A DNA stretch of 63,843 bases, filler included, from Lenisia limosa (taxonomy: Eukaryota > Protista > Breviatea), in the NCBI GenBank assembly GCA_001655205.1. It is 13 parts of 13 records of this genome, joined end to end, with 100 filler letters (N's around TTAATTAATTAA, not from the genome) between each part and the next. Parts side by side here need not be neighbours in the genome. Positions count along the whole stretch, not along the records: positions 15,243 to 22,821 come from LPNZ01010130.1; 12 more parts are not named here. The stretch is one strand, 5' to 3'. The translations under genes and the position numbers were made by a program. Shown piece by piece: positions 14,061-22,921 of the stretch (its first letter is position 1; each line of letters starts with the position of its first letter). The notes under the pieces are model-generated. The model was given only the letters and a program-made list of their open reading frames with translations, was not told the DNA's origin and made no database searches.

Positions 14061-15284
14061 AGTGGGGGGGGGGGTAATTGAGATTCTATCTATTTTGTTA
14101 GTTTCAAAATTAACTGCACAGGGTCCAAACAAACTCACTTCATAGCATTTTATTGTCTGCATATCACTGATCGTTCACCCACACCCAAAATAGCAACGTA
14201 AACCACGTACAAAACTGTTGTATTGATATGGAAACGGTTGTTTAGAAGAGCGGAGAACATCCTCAGCCCTTCATGCGACGTGCGGCCAATGTCCCAGTCG
14301 AGCTCCAGGCTATAACTTGCCGGTCTGCGTACTGCTGGCGTCTGATTTGCCTTGGCCGAAGGCCAAATGAACTGATCCATCAGAACGTTCCTGTAGAAAC
14401 ACTGAAGTGAAATGTGCCAAGAATAATAAGAACAGACAAGAACAGCAATTCAAGCAAATTAAGACAGAGGATGAAACTCACCGAGTATGGTCGTCACAAT
14501 GGTCGTGCTCCGTTCGCTCACTAATTGCCTGTGTTTGCTATCAATAAGAATAAACACTCATATCACCCACTTGTCGTGTCCTTTGATGGCGGTCTGCACC
14601 CCTAGTAATGTCTCACGCACGACCCGAGACAGAGGAGGCCAACTTTGGATGTAGAGAACTATTTTGTAAGTTTATATATTGCATGTAGTCAGCAACGTGC
14701 CTAAGCCACCAGTTCTTCTTAAGCCTACCTCAGAAGAAAGCCAAAAAGTCCAACAGACTTTTCTCTGTAATGTTTGAAGCCACCCTCGTACATACCAATT
14801 CCAGACCCTTAGTTGGAGACCCCAAAAATGAGAAGGAGATAGCCTGGTTAGTGAAGAACACCACGCTGAAGGAACCCTAGCTTCCCAGGCTCCACTCCTG
14901 GGATGAGGAGATCAGTGCGAGGCCACCTTCGCATGACAAGGTAGTTCTAATGACAGTCAAATACTATCACGAACAATTGAGGTAGCTCGAAGGGTCTCCA
15001 CCGAGGGGGTAGAGGTTGGCGTCATCCATGTCCTCGGGGCAGAGAAGTACAAATGTCGACCACATTTATAGTGGGATTGTCTCATGGACAGTGAAATGTT
15101 GGGTCCGCTGGTGGGAAAAGAGTATAGGTGACCATACATAACNNNNNNNNNNNNNNNNNNNNNNNNNNNNNNNNNNNNNNNNNNNNTTAATTAATTAANN
15201 NNNNNNNNNNNNNNNNNNNNNNNNNNNNNNNNNNNNNNNNNNCCATCAGTTCATTACAATGATTGAAGTTTGAGATCAAGAAAA

Positions 15285-15525
15285 TACACGCTTATAGGAG
15301 ATATTGGATTATAGTATAATACTAATTCACTCAATCATTTGCCTAACAACTCTGTGCACCTCCACAGTATACACATCGGAGTTCATAAACAGTGACCATG
15401 TGGTGAGTCTTGACCGATTGAATCAGATTTCATCTCACACAGTGAAGTCTTCAGAGTAACATTGGTATTATACTGGAGTGAATATAATTCAATATCTCTT
15501 AAGCGTGATGGTGTGGACGGCTACG
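15285..15525. repeat. Two family D copies in inverted orientation with a family E fragment between them
   Basis: Forward CACGCTTATAGGAGATATTGGATTATAG...CAATCATTTGCC near 15285; reverse TCAATATCTCTTAAGCGTGATGGTGTGGACGGC near 15490; CAGTGACC...TTGACCGATT near 15390. Confidence 0.7.
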
Positions 15526-16066
15526 TCAAGATACAACCTATTTATTCCTCATTCTGGAGTGAACATTTAGTTAGAGAAGATCCACCCCCCCCCCCCNNNN
15601 NNNNNNNNNNNNNNNNNNNNNNNNNNNNNNNNNNNNNNNNNNNNNNNNNNNNNNNNNNNNNNNNNNNNNNNNNNNNNNNNNNNNNNNNNNNNNNNNNNNN
15701 NNNNNNNNNNNNNNNNNNNNNNNNNNNNNNNNNNNNNNNNNNNNNNNNNNNNNNNNNNNNNNNNNNNNNNNNNNNNNNNNNNNNNNNNNNNNNNNNNNNN
15801 NNNNNNNNNNNNNNNNNNNACATTCTCTTGAAAAGGCACAGTGCTGTTGACTGGGGGGTGGGGTAAACAAAGGACGTTTAGATGAATAATATTGGCTTAA
15901 AGGTATGTAAAAAGACGACAAGGGCGGGCGGTGGTTCAAAGATGGTCAGGAGGGGTAAACAGATGGTTACCAAAGGAAGCCTGGTAAATGAAGATTTACT
16001 TTATAGATAAAGATACGTGAGTTTGTCAAAGAAGTGATAAGATATAATAGTATAAATGCGTAGTTG

Positions 16067-16200
16067 ACTGGGGTGTGGGGAGTAAAATTGGAAAATTTAT
16101 GAAAAAAAAAGCCCAAATAAACTCTTTAGCCCAAAATCAACTCTACTAGTTAACAACCATCGAGGACTGAAAACAACAAAACAAAAGCATCCCATCACTT
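16067..16200 (-). repeat. Family B element
   Basis: GTGATGGGATGC...AGAGTTGATTTTGGGCT...TTTTCCAATTTTACTCCCCACACCCCAG on the minus strand. Confidence 0.78.
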
Positions 16201-16252
16201 GCGTATGATTTCAATATGGTACAGTAATGTCTTGCTGATATCATGTCATCGG

Positions 16253-16352
16253 TAGGGCTTCACTTCGGTTCAAAAAAGAACGGTAAAATATCGATGGTTT
16301 TCGGCGATTTATCGATACATTCAGTCTTTTTTTGAACCGAAGTGAAGACCGA
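16253..16352. mobile_element. Family A hAT-type MITE
   Basis: TAGGGCTTCACTTCGGTTCAAAAAAGA...TCTTTTTTTGAACCGAAGTGAAGACCGA; both flanks begin GTCA. Confidence 0.88.
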
Positions 16353-16548
16353 GTCACTCCTCTAGCTGTGAATATTTATTTTCCCCACTGATGCAAAATA
16401 CATGCTTGTGGGGGTTCATCATGGTTCAATGTAGTGTCACCCCCCTTATCCCAGGAGGATGGGTTGGGGTTTGCGCATCAGTACCAGTATATCATTTATT
16501 CACATTGTGATAAGCGTTCAAAAACTGCTGATTCAGAACACCACTAAC

Positions 16549-16999
16549 CTTCACTGTCGTGCTGAACTCAAACGAATTGCATGCCTCCACCAGTTTATGC
16601 AGGTAGAAGAGAAGCAGGTGGTTTTCCTCTTCCAGTTCCAATGGCGCAACCTCAACGTCTAACGGTAATGTGTAGACGGGTTCTGCGGTTGCAGCTTTAG
16701 GATCTGGGAAATATAAGCGTCCTATCGCCAAAGCACACTGTAGCATCCATCATTCGTCATAGAAGGCCTAAGAAGAGCTTACCAAAGGCTGGAGTTGGAG
16801 CAGGGATTGGAGATCCATCTCCAGTTACTCTCTTTTTGGGAGTTGAAGATGGGGTTTCCGGTGAATCAAGTGGTCTTTTCCCAGTATCTGTGAAAACTCG
16901 CCTTGAAAATGCTCTGTGCCACGCTGCTCTCCGCTTTTCGGCTATTTCCTCGGCCGTAAAGCTCCAGTTTTCATACTGCTTTGAATCAAAGTAGGCCAT
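16549..16999 (-). CDS. CCNH: Cyclin H-like, N-terminal exons only
   Basis: MAYFDSKQYENWSFTAEEIAEKRRAA and LELEEENHLLLFYLHKLVEACNSFEFSTTVK match the cyclin H/Ccl1 N-terminus (SxQxxxWxF; LxxEEExxL..Y). The following TAxxYFKRF exon was not found. Confidence 0.65.
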
Positions 17000-17212
17000 A
17001 GTCAAAGAAAAGGGAACAGTGAAAAATTTTCAGGATATAAAATAAAACAGGTAGGGGACACATCGTTTGATGGGATGTAGAGGTAAGGATGTGTTGCGGA
17101 TTTAAGTTGTTAATTGTTTTGTATTTTTTCTACCAACCACATATGATGTTTGGAATATTTCAAACCACAAAAGTTATTCAAGAGAAGGTTCTATTGAATC
17201 GAGAGAAAAGAT

Positions 17213-18828
17213 CTACTCGTCATCCTCCTCAGCGGCATCACCCTTGTTGGCCTTGTTGCGAGCAACACGACGGGCAACACGTCCGGGGCGGCCGGCAGCG
17301 AAGGGAGAGCTGGAGGCGTAGTCGATGTGCTAAAGGAATATTAGAGGAAATCAAAAAGTTCTGGATTGGGGGGGAGGGAAGTGAAGTGATCAGACAGTAT
17401 CTGGCTTAGATGAGGTAAACACCATCGTAACAATGAATACCCTCCCGAAAGTAATCTTGGTCGTCATACGGGGAAAGAATGTACATCATATCACATTGAT
17501 CCAATAGAGATGAAAGAATGCAAACCTTCTCGGAGTCGGTGTGGACGAGGAAGCTAGGGACAGTCACGAGCTGCTTGCCGACGCTGGAATATGAGATGTT
17601 GCCAAGAACACATAGAGGAGATGGAAGGTGAATGATCAGACAAAATCTGGCTTAGATGAGGTAAACACCATCGTAACAATGAATACCCTCCCGAAAGTAA
17701 TCTTGGTCGTCATACGGGGAAAGAATGTACATCATCTCATAAACATGTTGGGAAATAGAGAGCCCTCGTACCGGATATGACGCTGGCGGATGAGAACACG
17801 AGCGTGATGGATGGACTTAGCGTGGCCCTTCTTCTTGACGATAGTCTGAAGACGACGGTTCAGGAGATCCTCAATCTTGATGGAGAGGATGGAATCGAGA
17901 GAAAGGTCATCTTCGGAAAGGATGCCGAGACGAACGCAGCGACGGATGAGGGCGGTACCTTCGAAAACGCGGCGAGAGTCCTAGCAGAGTCAAGAAAAGC
18001 AACAAAAGAATTGTTTTTAAAAATGAATGGCGAATGATCAGACAAAATCTGGCTTAGATGAGGTAAACACCATCGTAACAATGAATACCCGCCCGAAAGT
18101 AATCTTGGTCGTCATACGGGGAAAGAATGTACATCATCTCATAAACATGTTCTAAAATAGCAAATACAACCGAACAAACCTTAGGCTCAAGGGTGAGGAG
18201 CTCACGAGCAGCCTTACGGAGCTTGGCGAGGGCAAGACGGCAGCGCCAGACTTCCTTCTTGCAGCGGAGACCGAACTCACCTGGAAAAGTTAGACTGGTC
18301 AAGAGAAGACATTAAAGAAATAAAAAAATGACAAAAAAATCGAGAAGATCATCACGCGCTTACCGAGGAGTTTCATCTCTTCGTCGAGGCGAGCCTTCTC
18401 GAAAGGACGCTTGGGAGTCTTGTAGGTCTTAGAGCCTGTGAAAAGGTAAAACCTAGACCCACGACAATCAAGCTTTAGCCACCATGCCAAGGAAACTTTC
18501 ACAACCACAACTCTCAAGGGGCCTAGGCTTGAGGGCAGTCAGAAATCCAAGAGGGAACTGCAGACATGAAAGTCTTTCAGGAAGTGTCGTTGGTTTCCCA
18601 TTAGATGCGTTACAAACAGCAACATTGCCGCAAAGAGTGCACCTCGTGAGAGGGAGAGCGATGAGGGTTAATGTGTTCATAAAAATCCATTCGTATCTCG
18701 AGGACCGCAGCAAAACTTCACCAGAACAAAGAGGGAATAAAACACATGAAGCCAGTTGGGTGACCGGCATTGACAAATACACACAAAAAAAAGTAGGAGA
18801 GTCTAGGTGTACAGTTAACACGAACCAT
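17213..18828 (-). CDS. RPS9: 40S ribosomal protein S9 (uS4), 6 exons
   Basis: MVRVN|[24 protein letters not shown]|[13 protein letters not shown]...LLTLEPK|[14 protein letters not shown]...RRLQT...[13 protein letters not shown]|[20 protein letters not shown]|[10 protein letters not shown]...EEDDE*. Confidence 0.97.
17388..17492 (-). ncRNA. Box C/D snoRNA, snR190/SNORD12-like guide, copy in RPS9 intron 5
   Basis: C-like box ATGATGT, D box CTGA (17390-17393), guide TTCTTTCCCCG directly upstream of D'-like ATGA, complementary to LSU rRNA CGGGGAAAGAA. Confidence 0.82.
17633..17740 (-). ncRNA. Box C/D snoRNA, snR190/SNORD12-like guide, copy in RPS9 intron 4
   Basis: Near-identical to the other two copies; D box 17636-17639, C-like box 17729-17735. 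Confidence 0.85.
18035..18142 (-). ncRNA. Box C/D snoRNA, snR190/SNORD12-like guide, copy in RPS9 intron 3
   Basis: One substitution relative to the intron 4 copy; D box 18038-18041, C-like box 18131-18137. Confidence 0.85.
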
Positions 18829-19165
18829 CTTGACGATAAAAAGGATTAGCAAGAAACAAAAATCCAATAAAAAGCAAATTGGGTATACACAGTTCAGTTC
18901 ATTTCAGTTTATTACGAAATTAAAATGTTTACGTAATCATCTTGTAGACTTATCTACCGCTTAAGTTTAGAACTTTTTTGAAGATATTAAAGGAAATATT
19001 AAGCAGAAGAAGAATTAAAATATGATTCCATTAAGTTTGGCCACCATTTAGCACAAACTGGTATTCTACAGATATCAGTCAATATTCGAAATTAATTGCT
19101 TTTAAGGAATTTTTTTCTCGAGGAGAATCGTTCGAATTGACTTCTCTCTGGTTTTTAATATCATC
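18829..19165. promoter_or_regulatory. Probable shared divergent promoter region RPS9 / PHB2
   Basis: 337 bp of AT-rich DNA between head-to-head start codons at 18828 (-) and 19166 (+). No specific motif identified. Confidence 0.5.
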
Positions 19166-22100
19166 ATGAATCAGTTTAAGAATGCAATGACAAGGGTAGA
19201 AGTCCCAAAGAGGGCTATTGGGGCTGGGTTGACCTTACTAATTGGAGGAGGACTCATTGCAGCTGGTATTAGTGCCTCAATTTACAATGGTAGGTCAAGA
19301 TTGCAGGTTAGCTGACGGTTGCAGTCGAAGGTGGTCATCGTGCCTTGAAATTCAACAGAATTGGTGGACTTAGGAATAAGATTTATGGAGAAGGTACTCA
19401 TTTCAGGCTTCCTGGCATGGAATGGCCAATCATCTTTGATGTTCGGTATGTAATCCTGTTTTGTGTAGCACCACTCACCTTTCCAGCTCAAAACCCCGCG
19501 CTATCACCTCAGTGACCGGATCAAAGGGTCAGTGTCACGATGGCGTTTCATATCTGACATTTGTAGATCTTCAAATGGTGAACCTTACTCTTCGAGTTCT
19601 CGCCAAGCCCAACACCTCAAAGCTTCCAGAAATCTACCGTCGTCTTGGATCGAATTGGGACGACCGTATTCTGCCTTCCGTGTGCCATGAGGTCATGAAG
19701 GCTACTGTGGTAGGTTGGGAATGTCTTTTATTTTTTGAATAGAGAAATTATTATATGTTAAAGAGGAAGATCGATGGGGGCTTGGAGGAGATCATCTGTG
19801 GGACATTATTGCAGATAACGATCTATGCGATATGTTGAGTGAGATAATCTTTTTAATTTTGAGAAGAGAGCTACAAGGGATATGTTGAAGATGATCAGTG
19901 GGATGGTTATTGAGAATAGAGCATCTGTGGATACTTTTAAAAATTATGATGATATGAGGAATGGAGTATCGGTGGATTTTTTGAGGGGATATACATATAT
20001 TCAAAATCTTGGGAAACAAGCGAGTTTTCATAGGGAAATGAGGAAGAAGATCATTTGGGGAATGAGATGAATTGAGCATCAATGATATGTTCTTCTTTTT
20101 TAGACCCAAATAATCGAACATCGTATTATCTGTGAAGTACTCTTTGGAGAATATATATATCGATATAGCTATATATATATATATAGTATATTTTATATAT
20201 ATACTAGCTATATTACTCTTGCTTTCAAAAATAAAGATCAGAAAAGAGTAGTTGACAACCAACAGAGTTTGGGCTTTTTTTTTTTTAATAACTATCCAAT
20301 TTTACTCTCCCAGGCTCAATACAATGCTGCCCAACTGATCATGAACCGTGCTGAGGTGTCACGCGCGATCCGCCGCCGTGTTATTTCAAGATGCATGGAG
20401 TTCGACATTGTCCTCGATGATGTTGCTATTGTAAGGGGGGGGGGGTGATGTTGCTATTGTATTGNNNNNNNNNNNNNNNNNNNNNNNNNNNNNNNNNNNN
20501 NNNNNNNNNNNNNNNNNNNNNNNNNNNNNNNNNNNNNNNNNNNNNNNNNNNNNNNNNNNNNNNNNNNNNNNNNNNNNNNNNNNNNNNNNNNNNNNNNNNN
20601 NNNNNNNNNNNNNNNNNNNNNNNNNNNNNNNNNTAATACAGCATCATTCACGCCACCCCCCTATCACATAAAATAGCGTCAGCATCATCCCTTACAAGGT
20701 ATTATTAGGATGATGATTGTATTGTATTATTAGAAAAGGATGATGATTGTGCTCTATTATTATGAGAGGATGAAAAGATGATGATGGTGTTATTATGAGA
20801 GGATGATGCTGTATTATTATTTGTGATGATTGTGCTGTATTATTATGAGAGGATGATGATTGTGCTGTATTATTATGAGAGGATGTCGCTATTGTAAGGG
20901 GGGGGGGGNNNNNNNNNNNNNNNNNNNNNNNNNNNNNNNNNNNNNNNNNNNNNNNNNNNNNNNNNNNNNNNNNNNNNNNNNNNNNNNNNNNNNNNNNNNN
21001 NNNNNNNNNNNNNNNNNNNNNNNNNNNNNNNNNNTTCTCCCACCAATACTCCGCTGCTGTGGAAGCCAAACAAGTCGGTATGTCGGGTATTTTTTTTTTG
21101 AGGGATTCTGTTAAGGGATCTGCTTCAAAAAAAAAAATGAAAAATGAAAAAAAAACAACAAAGTGTCGATATTCATTGGGGATGCCCACCTTTGGGCTTC
21201 ACTTCGATCCGAAAAAGGCTGGGAAAATATCGATAGCTTTTGACGATTTATCGAGAAATTCAGTTTTTCGAATCGAAGTGAAGCTCTACCCCACCCCCAT
21301 GGTTTTTCGCTGGCGTGATGAGATGCGGTGGTAGAAGCGACTGACCTGGGCTTTGTTGTTGTTATCAACCCTTGAGTCAACAGAGTTGATTTTGGGCTTT
21401 TTTGTTTCACAAACTTCCCTCCCCCCCTTTGATGAGATTTTTTTTCCCCCATATTTTTTTCATATTTACCCTTTTTGTTTTTTTTTTGTCATATTCACCC
21501 TTTTTTTGTTTTATTTTCATATTCATCCATTCACATTTATTTTTACATTTTCATTTTTTTTTACAGATTCTCACCTCCACAGCCCTTCAAGAAGCCGAGC
21601 GTGCTCGTTACCTTGTCGAGAGAGTAGGCGAACTTCTTTTCTTCCGTTTTCCTTTCTTTGCGTTTCCATTCCTTCTTTTCCTTTCTTTCTTTTCCTTTCT
21701 TTTCCTTTCTTTTCCTTTCTTTTCCTTTCTTTTCCTTTCTTTTCCTTTCTTTTCTTTCGTTTTTTTTGCCTTTTTGTTTCATAAACTTCTATGACAATAT
21801 CTTTTATATAGTATATTTCCATTACACCCTNNNNNNNNNNNNNNNNNNNNNNNNNNNNNNNNNNNNNNNNNNNNNNNNNNNNNNNNNNNNNNNNNNNNNN
21901 NNNNNNNNNNNNNNNNNNAAGCGTTCTTTCATTGTCAAGGCTCTTGGAGAAGCCAAGGCCGCCAAAATGATTGCTGAGGCTGTTGAGGGCAACCCTGGGT
22001 TCATTGCTTTGAGAAAGGTTGGCTTTTTTTACCATTATTTATAGTTAGGGGGGGGGGTATTGCTTTGAGAAAGGCAGGATGAAGAAGAGTGGGATATCTG

Positions 22101-22728
22101 TTACCGATAGGGCTTTCTTAAAATATCGATATTTATCGAGGTTTTATCGAGAAATTCAGTCTTTTTTTGGGACCGTAGGGAAGTCCTAGTTGCGGATATT
22201 AGGATATTATCGACTCCCCCTGATGTTGTGTTTCTGTTTAATATAATTTGATATCTATTCAATGGGCTTTGTTTGTTTGTTTTCAACCCTCTTGTGTTGG
22301 TAGCCAACAGAGTTGATTTTGAGCCCCCTCTCCCCACTTTTTTTTTTGTTTCATTCCGTTATTACGAAGTATAATATATTGTGCACTCTCGCGTCAGCCA
22401 ACAGAGTTGATTTTGGGCTTTTTTTTTAATATAAATTTTCCAACTTTACGTACGCTGGAGTGATGGGATGCGGTGTTGCAGAAGNNNNNNNNNNNNNNNN
22501 NNNNNNNNNNNNNNNNNNNNNNNNNNNNNNNNNNNNNNNNNNNNNNNNNNNNNNNNNNNNNNNNNNNNNNNNNNNNNNNNNNNNNNNNNNNNNNNNNNNN
22601 NNNNNNNNNNNNNNNNNNNNNNNNCCCTCCAGATTGAGGCGATGCGTGAAATTGCTGAGACTCTCGCAAAGGGCCAGAACCGTCTCTTCCTCTCTGCTGA
22701 CTCTCTTCTTCTTGATGGCAGCAAGTGA
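19166..22728 (+). CDS. PHB2: Prohibitin 2, multi-exon
   Basis: SIYN|[15 protein letters not shown]...EWPIIFDVR|[13 protein letters not shown]|[12 protein letters not shown]...[15 protein letters not shown]...|AQYNAAQL...DDVAI|...EAKQV|[14 protein letters not shown]|...ALRK|[27 protein letters not shown]. First three introns are 36, 41 and 39 nt. Confidence 0.95.
20253..20313 (+). repeat. Family B 3' part supplying the acceptor of PHB2 exon 5
   Basis: CAACCAACAGAGTTTGGGCTTTTT...CCAATTTTACTCTCCCAG|GCTCAATAC. Confidence 0.75.
20692..20908 (+). repeat. Intronic minisatellite, ~30 bp GATGATGATTGTGCTGTATTATTATGAGAG-like unit
   Basis: Degenerate tandem units ending in GATGTCGCTATTGTAAG followed by a G-run. 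Confidence 0.8.
21192..21288. mobile_element. Family A hAT-type MITE
   Basis: TTGGGCTTCACTTCGATCC...ATCGAAGTGAAGCTCTA; flanks GCCCACCT / CCCCACCC (6 of 8). Confidence 0.85.
21305..21427 (+). repeat. Family B element with its 5' head
   Basis: CGCTGGCGTGATGAGATGCGGTGGTAGAAG joined to CGACTGACCTGGGCTTTG...CAACAGAGTTGATTTTGGGC and a C-rich tail. Confidence 0.75.
21691..21755 (+). repeat. (TTTCCTTTCT)n intronic microsatellite
   Basis: About six tandem 10-bp units visible. Confidence 0.9.
22108..22188. mobile_element. Family A hAT-type MITE, internally deleted
   Basis: TAGGGCTT...GAAGTCCTA; flanks GTTACCGA / GTTGCGGA (6 of 8). Confidence 0.75.
22262..22484 (+). repeat. Cluster of family B fragments and a family B head
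   Basis: Two GCCAACAGAGTTGATTTTG segments (near 22300 and 22395), then CGCTGGAGTGATGGGATGCGGTGTTGCAGAAG before the gap. Confidence 0.7.
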
Positions 22729-22921
22729 GGGTGGTGGTGCAATGGCGGTAAAATGGATAGGATAAAGATGTGAAGTATGGGATATGTGGTGGTGATAATA
22801 GAAGGGGGTTAAGTATTGTTTNNNNNNNNNNNNNNNNNNNNNNNNNNNNNNNNNNNNNNNNNNNNTTAATTAATTAANNNNNNNNNNNNNNNNNNNNNNN
22901 NNNNNNNNNNNNNNNNNNNNN

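Follow-up and report, generated by a model that had tools for sequence, protein, structure and literature searches.

Exon ends duplicated beside G runs in PHB2 of Lenisia limosa, and an associated repeat family with homopolymer ends

The window described here, the whole stretch of DNA that was analysed, comprises 63,843 nt from the breviate Lenisia limosa, joined from 13 parts of GenBank assembly GCA_001655205.1. One of these parts (LPNZ01010130.1) carries a cyclin-like gene, an RPS9 gene and PHB2 (Table 1). Three of the PHB2 introns are short (35-41 nt) and several are longer (260-600 nt). Each longer intron is a densely packed mosaic of more than one repeat, with word depths of 10^4 to 7x10^4 vs about 35 for single-copy sequence. 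At two PHB2 donors, the end of the exon and the first intron bases are found a second time in the intron, directly or 1 nt beyond a long G run. We refer to these duplications as echoes and present their anatomy, the evidence that they are real, the repeat family with which such runs are associated, and the explanations that may account for them.

Table 1. Features of the PHB2 region, with positions counted along the window; a slash marks a splice junction
Feature	Position	Strand	Basis
Piece with cyclin-like gene (-), RPS9 gene (-) and PHB2 (+)	15243..22821		
C12 run adjoining an N gap; reads as a G run for the neighbouring minus-strand gene	15585..15596	+	
Element-C 3' part; its end ..TTTTACTCTCCCAG is the exon 5 acceptor	20251..20313	+	RNA joint
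PHB2 exon 5 (..DDVAI)	20314..20430	+	RNA contig joints 19708->20313 and 20430->21035; translation
Echo 1 first copy (X1): 13 nt of exon end + first 3 nt of intron (GTA of used donor)	20418..20433	+	
Echo 1 insert: A + G11	20434..20445	+	
Echo 1 second copy (X2), intronic; decoy donor GTATTG, unused by the RNA contig	20446..20461	+	
Inverted, gapped exon-end copy + A + G6, in loop of long palindrome	20653..20689	-	Local alignment score 29; inverted repeats
Locus-specific ~30-nt repeat related to exon end: right arm and extra units	20707..20880	+	
Third module copy: GGATGTCGCTATTGTA + A + G11, 2 mismatches to echo 1 first copy	20881..20908	+	
Element-C copy, consensus 4-134, in intron 6	21308..21419	+	Depth ~10^4
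PHB2 exon 8 (..GFIALRK), visible part; start inside N gap	21919..22017	+	RNA joints 21624->21919 (+11 nt) and 22015(+2)->22631
Echo 2 first copy: 15 nt of exon end + first 1 nt of intron (G of used donor)	22003..22018	+	
Echo 2 insert: 29 nt (TTGGC-T7-..GTTA) + G10/G11 + T	22019..22058	+	
Echo 2 second copy; next base C, decoy AAAG/GC	22059..22074	+	
Three Element-C copies, intron 8	22263..22484	+	

Both echoes follow the order X, 1 or 29 nt, run, 0 or 1 nt, X. In echo 1, at the end of exon 5, X is the 16-mer TGATGTTGCTATTGTA, and its two copies (16 of 16 nt identical) are separated by A and G11; together with the GTA that precedes it, this insert reads GTAA-G11, the reverse complement of a C(n)-TTAC repeat end of the kind described below. 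In echo 2, at the end of exon 8, X is the 16-mer ATTGCTTTGAGAAAGG, again identical at 16 of 16 nt, and the copies are separated by 29 nt, G10 and T, the run being G11 in two other assemblies. The repeat is thus exactly 16 nt long in both cases. No microhomology was found at the four echo junctions, where the neighbours of the copies differ in every instance, and the spacer is not recopied after the second repeat, which is followed instead by TTGG.. or CAGG... Both layouts had been noted in an earlier sequence-only reading of the window and proved exact, both being present also in the k=31 and SPAdes-type contigs. Of the five loci named in that reading, the two in PHB2 are those covered here.

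The echo observation is confirmed by other assembly products. An N-free SPAdes-type contig (L001; ENA ERZ3820729; 10.7 kb, coverage 28) contains both echoes, is colinear with the PHB2 piece, and fills all five of its N gaps with sequence that matches the letters between exons in the RNA contig. A 2,653-nt k=31 contig from DNA run X1 of the same study equals positions 18122-20464 with zero differences, bridges the N gap that follows, and resumes after just 90 nt into 20634-20853, while a 405-nt k=31 contig equals 21919-22148 with one additional G. Neither echo was made by the scaffolder. Chance was rejected as their origin by 300 first-order Markov simulations of L001, which produced 0 exact direct repeats of at least 16 nt within 100 nt; with minisatellite arrays and the copies of one repeat family excluded, the two echoes are the only isolated pairs of such length in that contig.

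It is very unlikely that amplification, sequencing or assembly at homopolymers created the second copies and that the true genome has one copy at each site. Such an artefact would suit the position of the N gaps, all five of which adjoin or conceal a G/C run (three of the four long G/C runs of the piece lie within 20 nt of a gap), the very probable derivation of the three assemblies from one read set, with all reads from one sample, and the difference of 1 in run length between assemblies. The occurrence of every gap at a G/C run, however, indicates that true homopolymers caused the gaps. Since the k=31 contig has no differences, the 31-mers across the junctions have to be present in the reads; the multi-k assembler agrees, no contig without an echo is reported, and the five contigs sampled below are evenly covered at 21-34x, unlike amplified DNA. 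The runs moreover form part of splice signals that the mRNA employs and occupy a constant position in a repeat consensus. Assembler stutter, which the sequence-only reading had itself named as a way to dismiss the echoes, is contradicted by the presence of both copies in k=31 raw-read contigs and in the output of a second assembler. Artificial poly-G read tails taken up by the assembler were considered separately and rejected, because flanks of one and the same type carry G runs as well as C runs; their location inside used splice signals and at a fixed repeat-consensus position rules out such tails further.

A single 1,094-nt RNA contig joins 20430/GT to exon 6 and 22017/GT to 22633, so splicing takes the first copy as donor at both echoes. 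No joint from a second copy is listed for this contig, and the use of an echo donor that had been envisaged earlier does not appear at either locus. Echo 2 was also considered as an introner inserted into a continuous exon, a candidate that was rejected as the sequence after the second copy reaches a stop codon and is absent from the mRNA.

We regard as least probable of all that the second copies are kept for a function, either as an intronic U1-binding site beside a G-run enhancer or as part of an intron-end zipper stem, their origin being secondary. The G11 run of intron 8 pairs with the C10 run just before the acceptor in both the predicted minimum-energy and centroid folds, closing the intron, and the second copy of echo 2 sits just inside this predicted stem; the perfection of both echoes would also fit selection for function. 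Against this, intron 8 is the only intron with both a G and a C run, the decoy of echo 2 is GC and not GT, and perfect identity is equally well explained by youth.

G/C runs were counted as a class in five contigs (35.2 kb), namely L001 and four contigs found via a repeat-derived open reading frame (ORF; an exhaustive profile search gave four ORFs). There were 26 runs of 6 nt, 8 of 7, 1 of 8 and 3 of 9, followed by 3, 10, 9, 8 and 3 runs of 10, 11, 12, 13 and 14 nt, respectively, plus one of 16 nt. Runs of 10-14 nt therefore form a separate length class, at about 1 per kb, and A/T runs in the same 35.2 kb have no second length peak. GT occurs in the 4 nt preceding a G run in 19 of 36 cases (null 0.15; P=1e-7), and the GC content of the adjoining 60 nt on the G strand is 0.47 on the 5' side vs 0.36 on the 3' side (P=3e-4). 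These two asymmetries place the runs at exon/intron borders, the exon lying 5' of the run on the G strand. In sense orientation, they appear as a donor-side G run (..GAAG/GTGA-G11 in L002; ..CGGC/GT-G14 in L003) or as an acceptor-side C run. The donor-side G runs noted in the sequence-only reading are therefore correct and general.

Echoes are much less frequent than runs. Exact repeats were sought beside every run up to 300 nt away, together with tail-only repeats, and echo-type repeats were found at 2 of 37 runs, with 0 of 27 in the four unselected contigs; the earlier proposal of a recurrent mutational process is thus not shown by this sample. Except for one 10-mer, no repeat of at least 9 nt was detected at the other 35 runs or at the 24 copies of the repeat family described next. 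The absence of a convincing mirror image at acceptors, also noted earlier, stands apart from one weak candidate in contig L004. A 10-nt repeat around a truncated copy and C11 is one further case that resembles a target-site duplication (TSD).

One third of the G/C runs touch a repeat that we call Element-C. Its consensus of about 142 nt extends from GTACGCTGG.. to ..TTTTCCAATTTTAC and leads into a C-rich run, and the 24 copies on the five contigs (35 kb) lie in introns of unrelated genes. Copies begin anywhere between consensus positions 1 and 100, but almost all stop at 134-142, where the C run of about 10-14 nt follows. Nine runs are Element-C 3' ends, and three more C runs are fused to a truncated 5' end vs 0.05 expected (P=1.6e-5). 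G runs had been treated earlier as a free-standing intron feature; they instead belong to a repeat family, of which they form one end, and this family carries splice signals. Polar truncation together with a homopolymer end gives Element-C, we infer, the look of a retroposon. It lacks terminal inverted repeats, contains no tRNA-like gene and matches no Rfam family above threshold; weak Rfam hits of hairpin type were obtained only with the palindromic repeat. The 35 kb showed no RT or endonuclease gene, the repeat core had no exact match among JGI metagenome contigs, and word-index protein searches with repeat-derived ORFs returned nothing or the query alone.

The bases that follow the C run of Element-C are often TCAC, TTAC or TAAC. 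Read on the reverse strand, this end is GTGA, GTAA or GTTA and then a G run, a good donor; read forward, it is a polypyrimidine tract and AG. The same end can thus serve as an acceptor in one orientation and as a donor in the other. Element-C ends are the used PHB2 acceptors of exons 5, 8 and 9 (..CTCTCCCAG/, C11-ACAG/ and C10-TCCAG/, respectively). The last Element-C of intron 8 crosses an N gap and ends in C10-TCCAG, the used acceptor (visible at 22625-22632; RNA joint to 22631(+2)). Apart from echo 2, there are no sense-oriented, G-tailed copies. Word depths of 10^4 to 7x10^4 vs about 35 correspond to thousands of copies with common exact 31-mers, which implies recent activity, and all sampled copies differ from the consensus by about 8% or more. 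No TSD was detected on any of the 24 copies, which is weak evidence given their divergence; erosion of old TSDs in diverged copies is possible but unproven.

The form of the echoes bears on how they arose. Repeats of 16 nt, the lack of any shared junction base and the unrepeated spacer take the form of a TSD rather than that of a slipped or switched copy. Two mechanisms had been offered by the sequence-only reading, and one of them, a TSD of 16-18 bp from insertion of a short G/C-tailed sequence, fits the anatomy best. We tentatively favour a version of it in which each echo is the 16-nt TSD of a tiny, abortive, antisense, target-primed retro-insertion at an existing 5' splice site, made by the machinery that would spread Element-C, which lies in the same introns; antisense is the orientation that would fit an RNA ended by a C run. 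Under this reading, the sense strand would be nicked just after the donor GT(A), and the primer ..GTA-3' would pair with the ..UAC-3' of an RNA that ends ..C(n)-UYAC, or that reads slightly beyond. The cDNA would consist of A and G11 in echo 1 and of a 29-nt read-through, G11 and T in echo 2, halting right after the run. A second nick on the other strand, 16 nt upstream, would then allow fill-in to yield X-insert-X. The upstream copy would retain the exon and acquire a GTAA-G(n) donor context, and the downstream copy would become an unused decoy donor. A nick placed after the donor GT(A) would also explain why GT is frequent before G runs and why donors are the targets.

Several observations weaken the TSD reading. 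Only 2 of 37 runs have an echo and 0 of 24 element copies have a detectable TSD. The lack of any RT or endonuclease gene seen in the 35 kb counts against it as well, as does the origin of all reads from one sample. The 29-nt body of echo 2 has no match to any sampled element and, if taken as the 3' end of an element, carries a homopolymer of the wrong type, a G run in place of the C run of the family. Intron 5 adds a further difficulty, as the exon end recurs there a third time in direct and once in inverted orientation. Extended by the TGAT that follows, the third copy matches 20415-20452 as a direct repeat of 34 nt with two mismatches. The intron also contains some ten diverged 30-nt units of the repeat related to the exon end, in both orientations; the left arm of this repeat falls in the N gap at 20465-20633, the true size of which is 90 nt. 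These exon-end-related copies have single-copy depth and so arose locally. Intron 5 is therefore more complicated than one event: a single TSD cannot explain the third and inverted copies, which point to local duplication and strand switching, either afterwards or in place of a TSD.

Local duplication of DNA is the main rival for the echoes as a whole, and we consider it rather unlikely. In this alternative, the other of the two mechanisms proposed earlier, replication or repair would stall at a donor-side G run and the nascent strand would recopy the exon end by template switching or by templated insertion of the polymerase-theta type; repeated rounds, some on the opposite strand, would build a minisatellite or a palindrome. 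The intron 5 copies favour it (the third copy with A and G11, the inverted copy with G6 and the roughly ten 30-nt units, all at single-copy depth), as do the proximity of the template, which is 12 or 41 nt upstream and within 45 nt of the insertion point, and a background of short duplications, with 8 isolated run-free pairs in 35 kb. It is opposed by the absence of microhomology at all four junctions, the lack of a spacer copy after the second repeat, and the length of exactly 16 nt of both repeats. Echo 2 has no further copies, and short duplications never enclose a run in the unselected contigs. The G tract is also kept here, in contrast to G4/dog-1 deletions, in which it is reportedly lost.

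A more specific form of the TSD reading, which we think improbable, would make donors the preferred targets of a retroposon. The 3' end of its RNA, C(n)-UYAC, would be complementary to 5' splice-site DNA of the form GTRA-G(n), in a manner resembling U1 snRNA, so that nicked donors would prime RT. Each event would place a G run beside the donor, leave a second exon end that acts as a decoy donor, and create further targets that bear runs. If true, this could account for 1 G/C run per kb at intron edges and for an introner spliceable in both orientations.

Should the favoured TSD reading hold, the echoes would be recent traces of the process that shapes introns in this genome. A homopolymer-ended retroposon would then supply an acceptor in one direction and a donor in the other, and might home to existing splice sites, so that the gain of introns and the reshaping of splice sites by mobile elements could be tested directly. 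On a practical level, G/C runs explain the assembly breaks, including every N gap in the piece, and decoy donors can mislead gene prediction.

The echoes and Element-C resemble several known systems, and the earlier claim that no described system has this signature overlooks introners and LINE/SINE-type TSDs. As in the TSDs of LINEs and SINEs (L1/Alu, including extremely 5'-truncated, tail-only inserts), exact repeats in the 7-20 nt range bound the echo insert, which ends in a homopolymer that reaches to within 1 nt of the downstream repeat; Element-C, the family associated with the runs, shows polar 5' truncation, and the priming end can pair with the 3' end of the RNA. Unlike in LINEs and SINEs, the homopolymer is C/G of 10-14 nt and not poly(A), the echo inserts have lengths of 12 and 41 nt, no autonomous partner turned up in 35 kb, most Element-C copies are without a TSD, and the apparent target is the 5' splice site.

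Known intronic features include G-run splicing enhancers and intron zipper stems. The runs described here are similarly placed, with G runs just 3' of donors and C runs just 5' of acceptors and with pairing predicted in intron 8; enhancers and zippers, however, concern function and not origin and leave the duplicated exon end unexplained. Polymerase-theta end joining with templated insertions occurs at G-tract breaks (Caenorhabditis elegans dog-1/FANCJ). The echoes share with these insertions a G tract beside a short insert copied from the flank within about 50 nt, and differ from them in having no microhomology, a retained tract and no evident deletion; the G tracts here also belong to a repeat family and are not free-standing. 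Simple tandem duplication or minisatellite formation differs in that the second copy of an echo comes without the spacer, yet additional copies are present in intron 5.

Most known introners are DNA transposons with terminal inverted repeats, of protists and algae. Introners are intron-generating transposons, found in Micromonas, Aureococcus and dinoflagellates, and non-LTR retrotransposons gave rise to about 5% of the classified families (PMC12130899). Like an introner, Element-C is an abundant, near-identical short element in the introns of unrelated genes, where it supplies used acceptors (PHB2 exons 5, 8 and 9). Unlike in introners, no whole intron was seen to consist of one Element-C copy and a TSD, and the splice module is the homopolymer end, which reads as an acceptor in forward and as a donor in reverse orientation. 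A further difference is the host, which by its RPS9 is an opisthokont. The literature yielded no earlier example of introners with homopolymer ends. The echoes and Element-C are not a new category and represent a variation on introners and retroposon TSDs. The more interesting result is the homopolymer-ended repeat itself, readable as a splice signal both ways and present about once per kb at intron edges.

A G or C run of 10 to 13 nt adjoins or is hidden in all five N gaps of LPNZ01010130.1. Each gap is too large, the true lengths being, in order, 192, 90, 50, 68, and 112 nt. Coordinates are given in the table below, with contigs L001 (N-free and colinear with this piece), L003, and L004 taken from one assembly (ENA ERZ3820729).

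Coordinates of the features in the window and on the assembly's contigs
Feature	Window	Contig	Details
N gaps	15597-15819, 20465-20633, 20909-21034, 21831-21918, 22485-22624
Palindromic repeat	16255-16350, 21195-21285, 22110-22185	L001 8850-8945	~90 nt
RPS9 introns	17334-17523, 17585-17771, 17980-18178		consecutive; minus strand
PHB2 short introns	19289-19323, 19445-19485, 19527-19565		GT..AG
PHB2 intron 7 microsatellite	21634-21762		TTTCC/TTCTTTTCCT, ~130 nt
PHB2 intron 8 G11	22048-22057	L001 7595-7605	29 nt past donor
PHB2 intron 8 C10	gap/22625-22627	L001 8138-8147	5 nt ahead of acceptor
Further PHB2 intron	22724 onward	L001 8224-8662	RNA contig
Compact series		L003 7207-7292	G14, 36 nt, T23, GTA, C13
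Flanked Element-C copy		L004 738-818	minus strand; CACATTTAGT either side of 5′-truncated copy + C11 + TTCT
Isolated short duplications		L003 3162-3207, 8728-8761; L004 490-528; L001 10369-10397

The plus-strand gene PHB2 contains three introns of just 35 to 41 nt alongside introns 260 to 600 nt long, and intron size is therefore bimodal. The two runs of intron 8 pair in both the predicted MFE and centroid folds, and this pairing would zip the intron's ends together. An RNA contig exits PHB2 at AGCAA/GTGAGG, directly before the apparent stop codon, and picks up again at L001 position 8663 (GGATCTCG..). This additional intron, which includes a G13 run, gives PHB2 a longer or alternative C-terminus.

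The L003 series begins directly past exon-like DNA (CGGC/GT) and may represent two run-bearing ends, opposed. The L004 arrangement, built around Element-C (an abundant ~142-nt repeat ending in a C run), immediately precedes exon-like DNA and is a possible mirror-image echo (exon-end copy) at an acceptor, the 10-mer alone not being significant. Isolated duplications of 14 to 21 nt, with copies 1 to 7 nt apart and no G/C run, constitute the genome's background of small tandem duplications.

The palindromic repeat (GGGCTTCACTTCGGTTCGAAAAA..TTTTTCGAACCGAAGTGAAGC) reaches a 31-mer depth of 7×10^4, versus 35 for single-copy DNA, and is therefore present in thousands of copies; Rfam returned only weak, miRNA-hairpin-like matches. 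Three consecutive introns of the minus-strand gene RPS9 have in common a ~105-nt core (>97% identity), for which Rfam gave no match. Because each core carries a C-box-like ATGATGT close to its start and CTGA close to its end, the three introns probably hold one copy each of a C/D box snoRNA.
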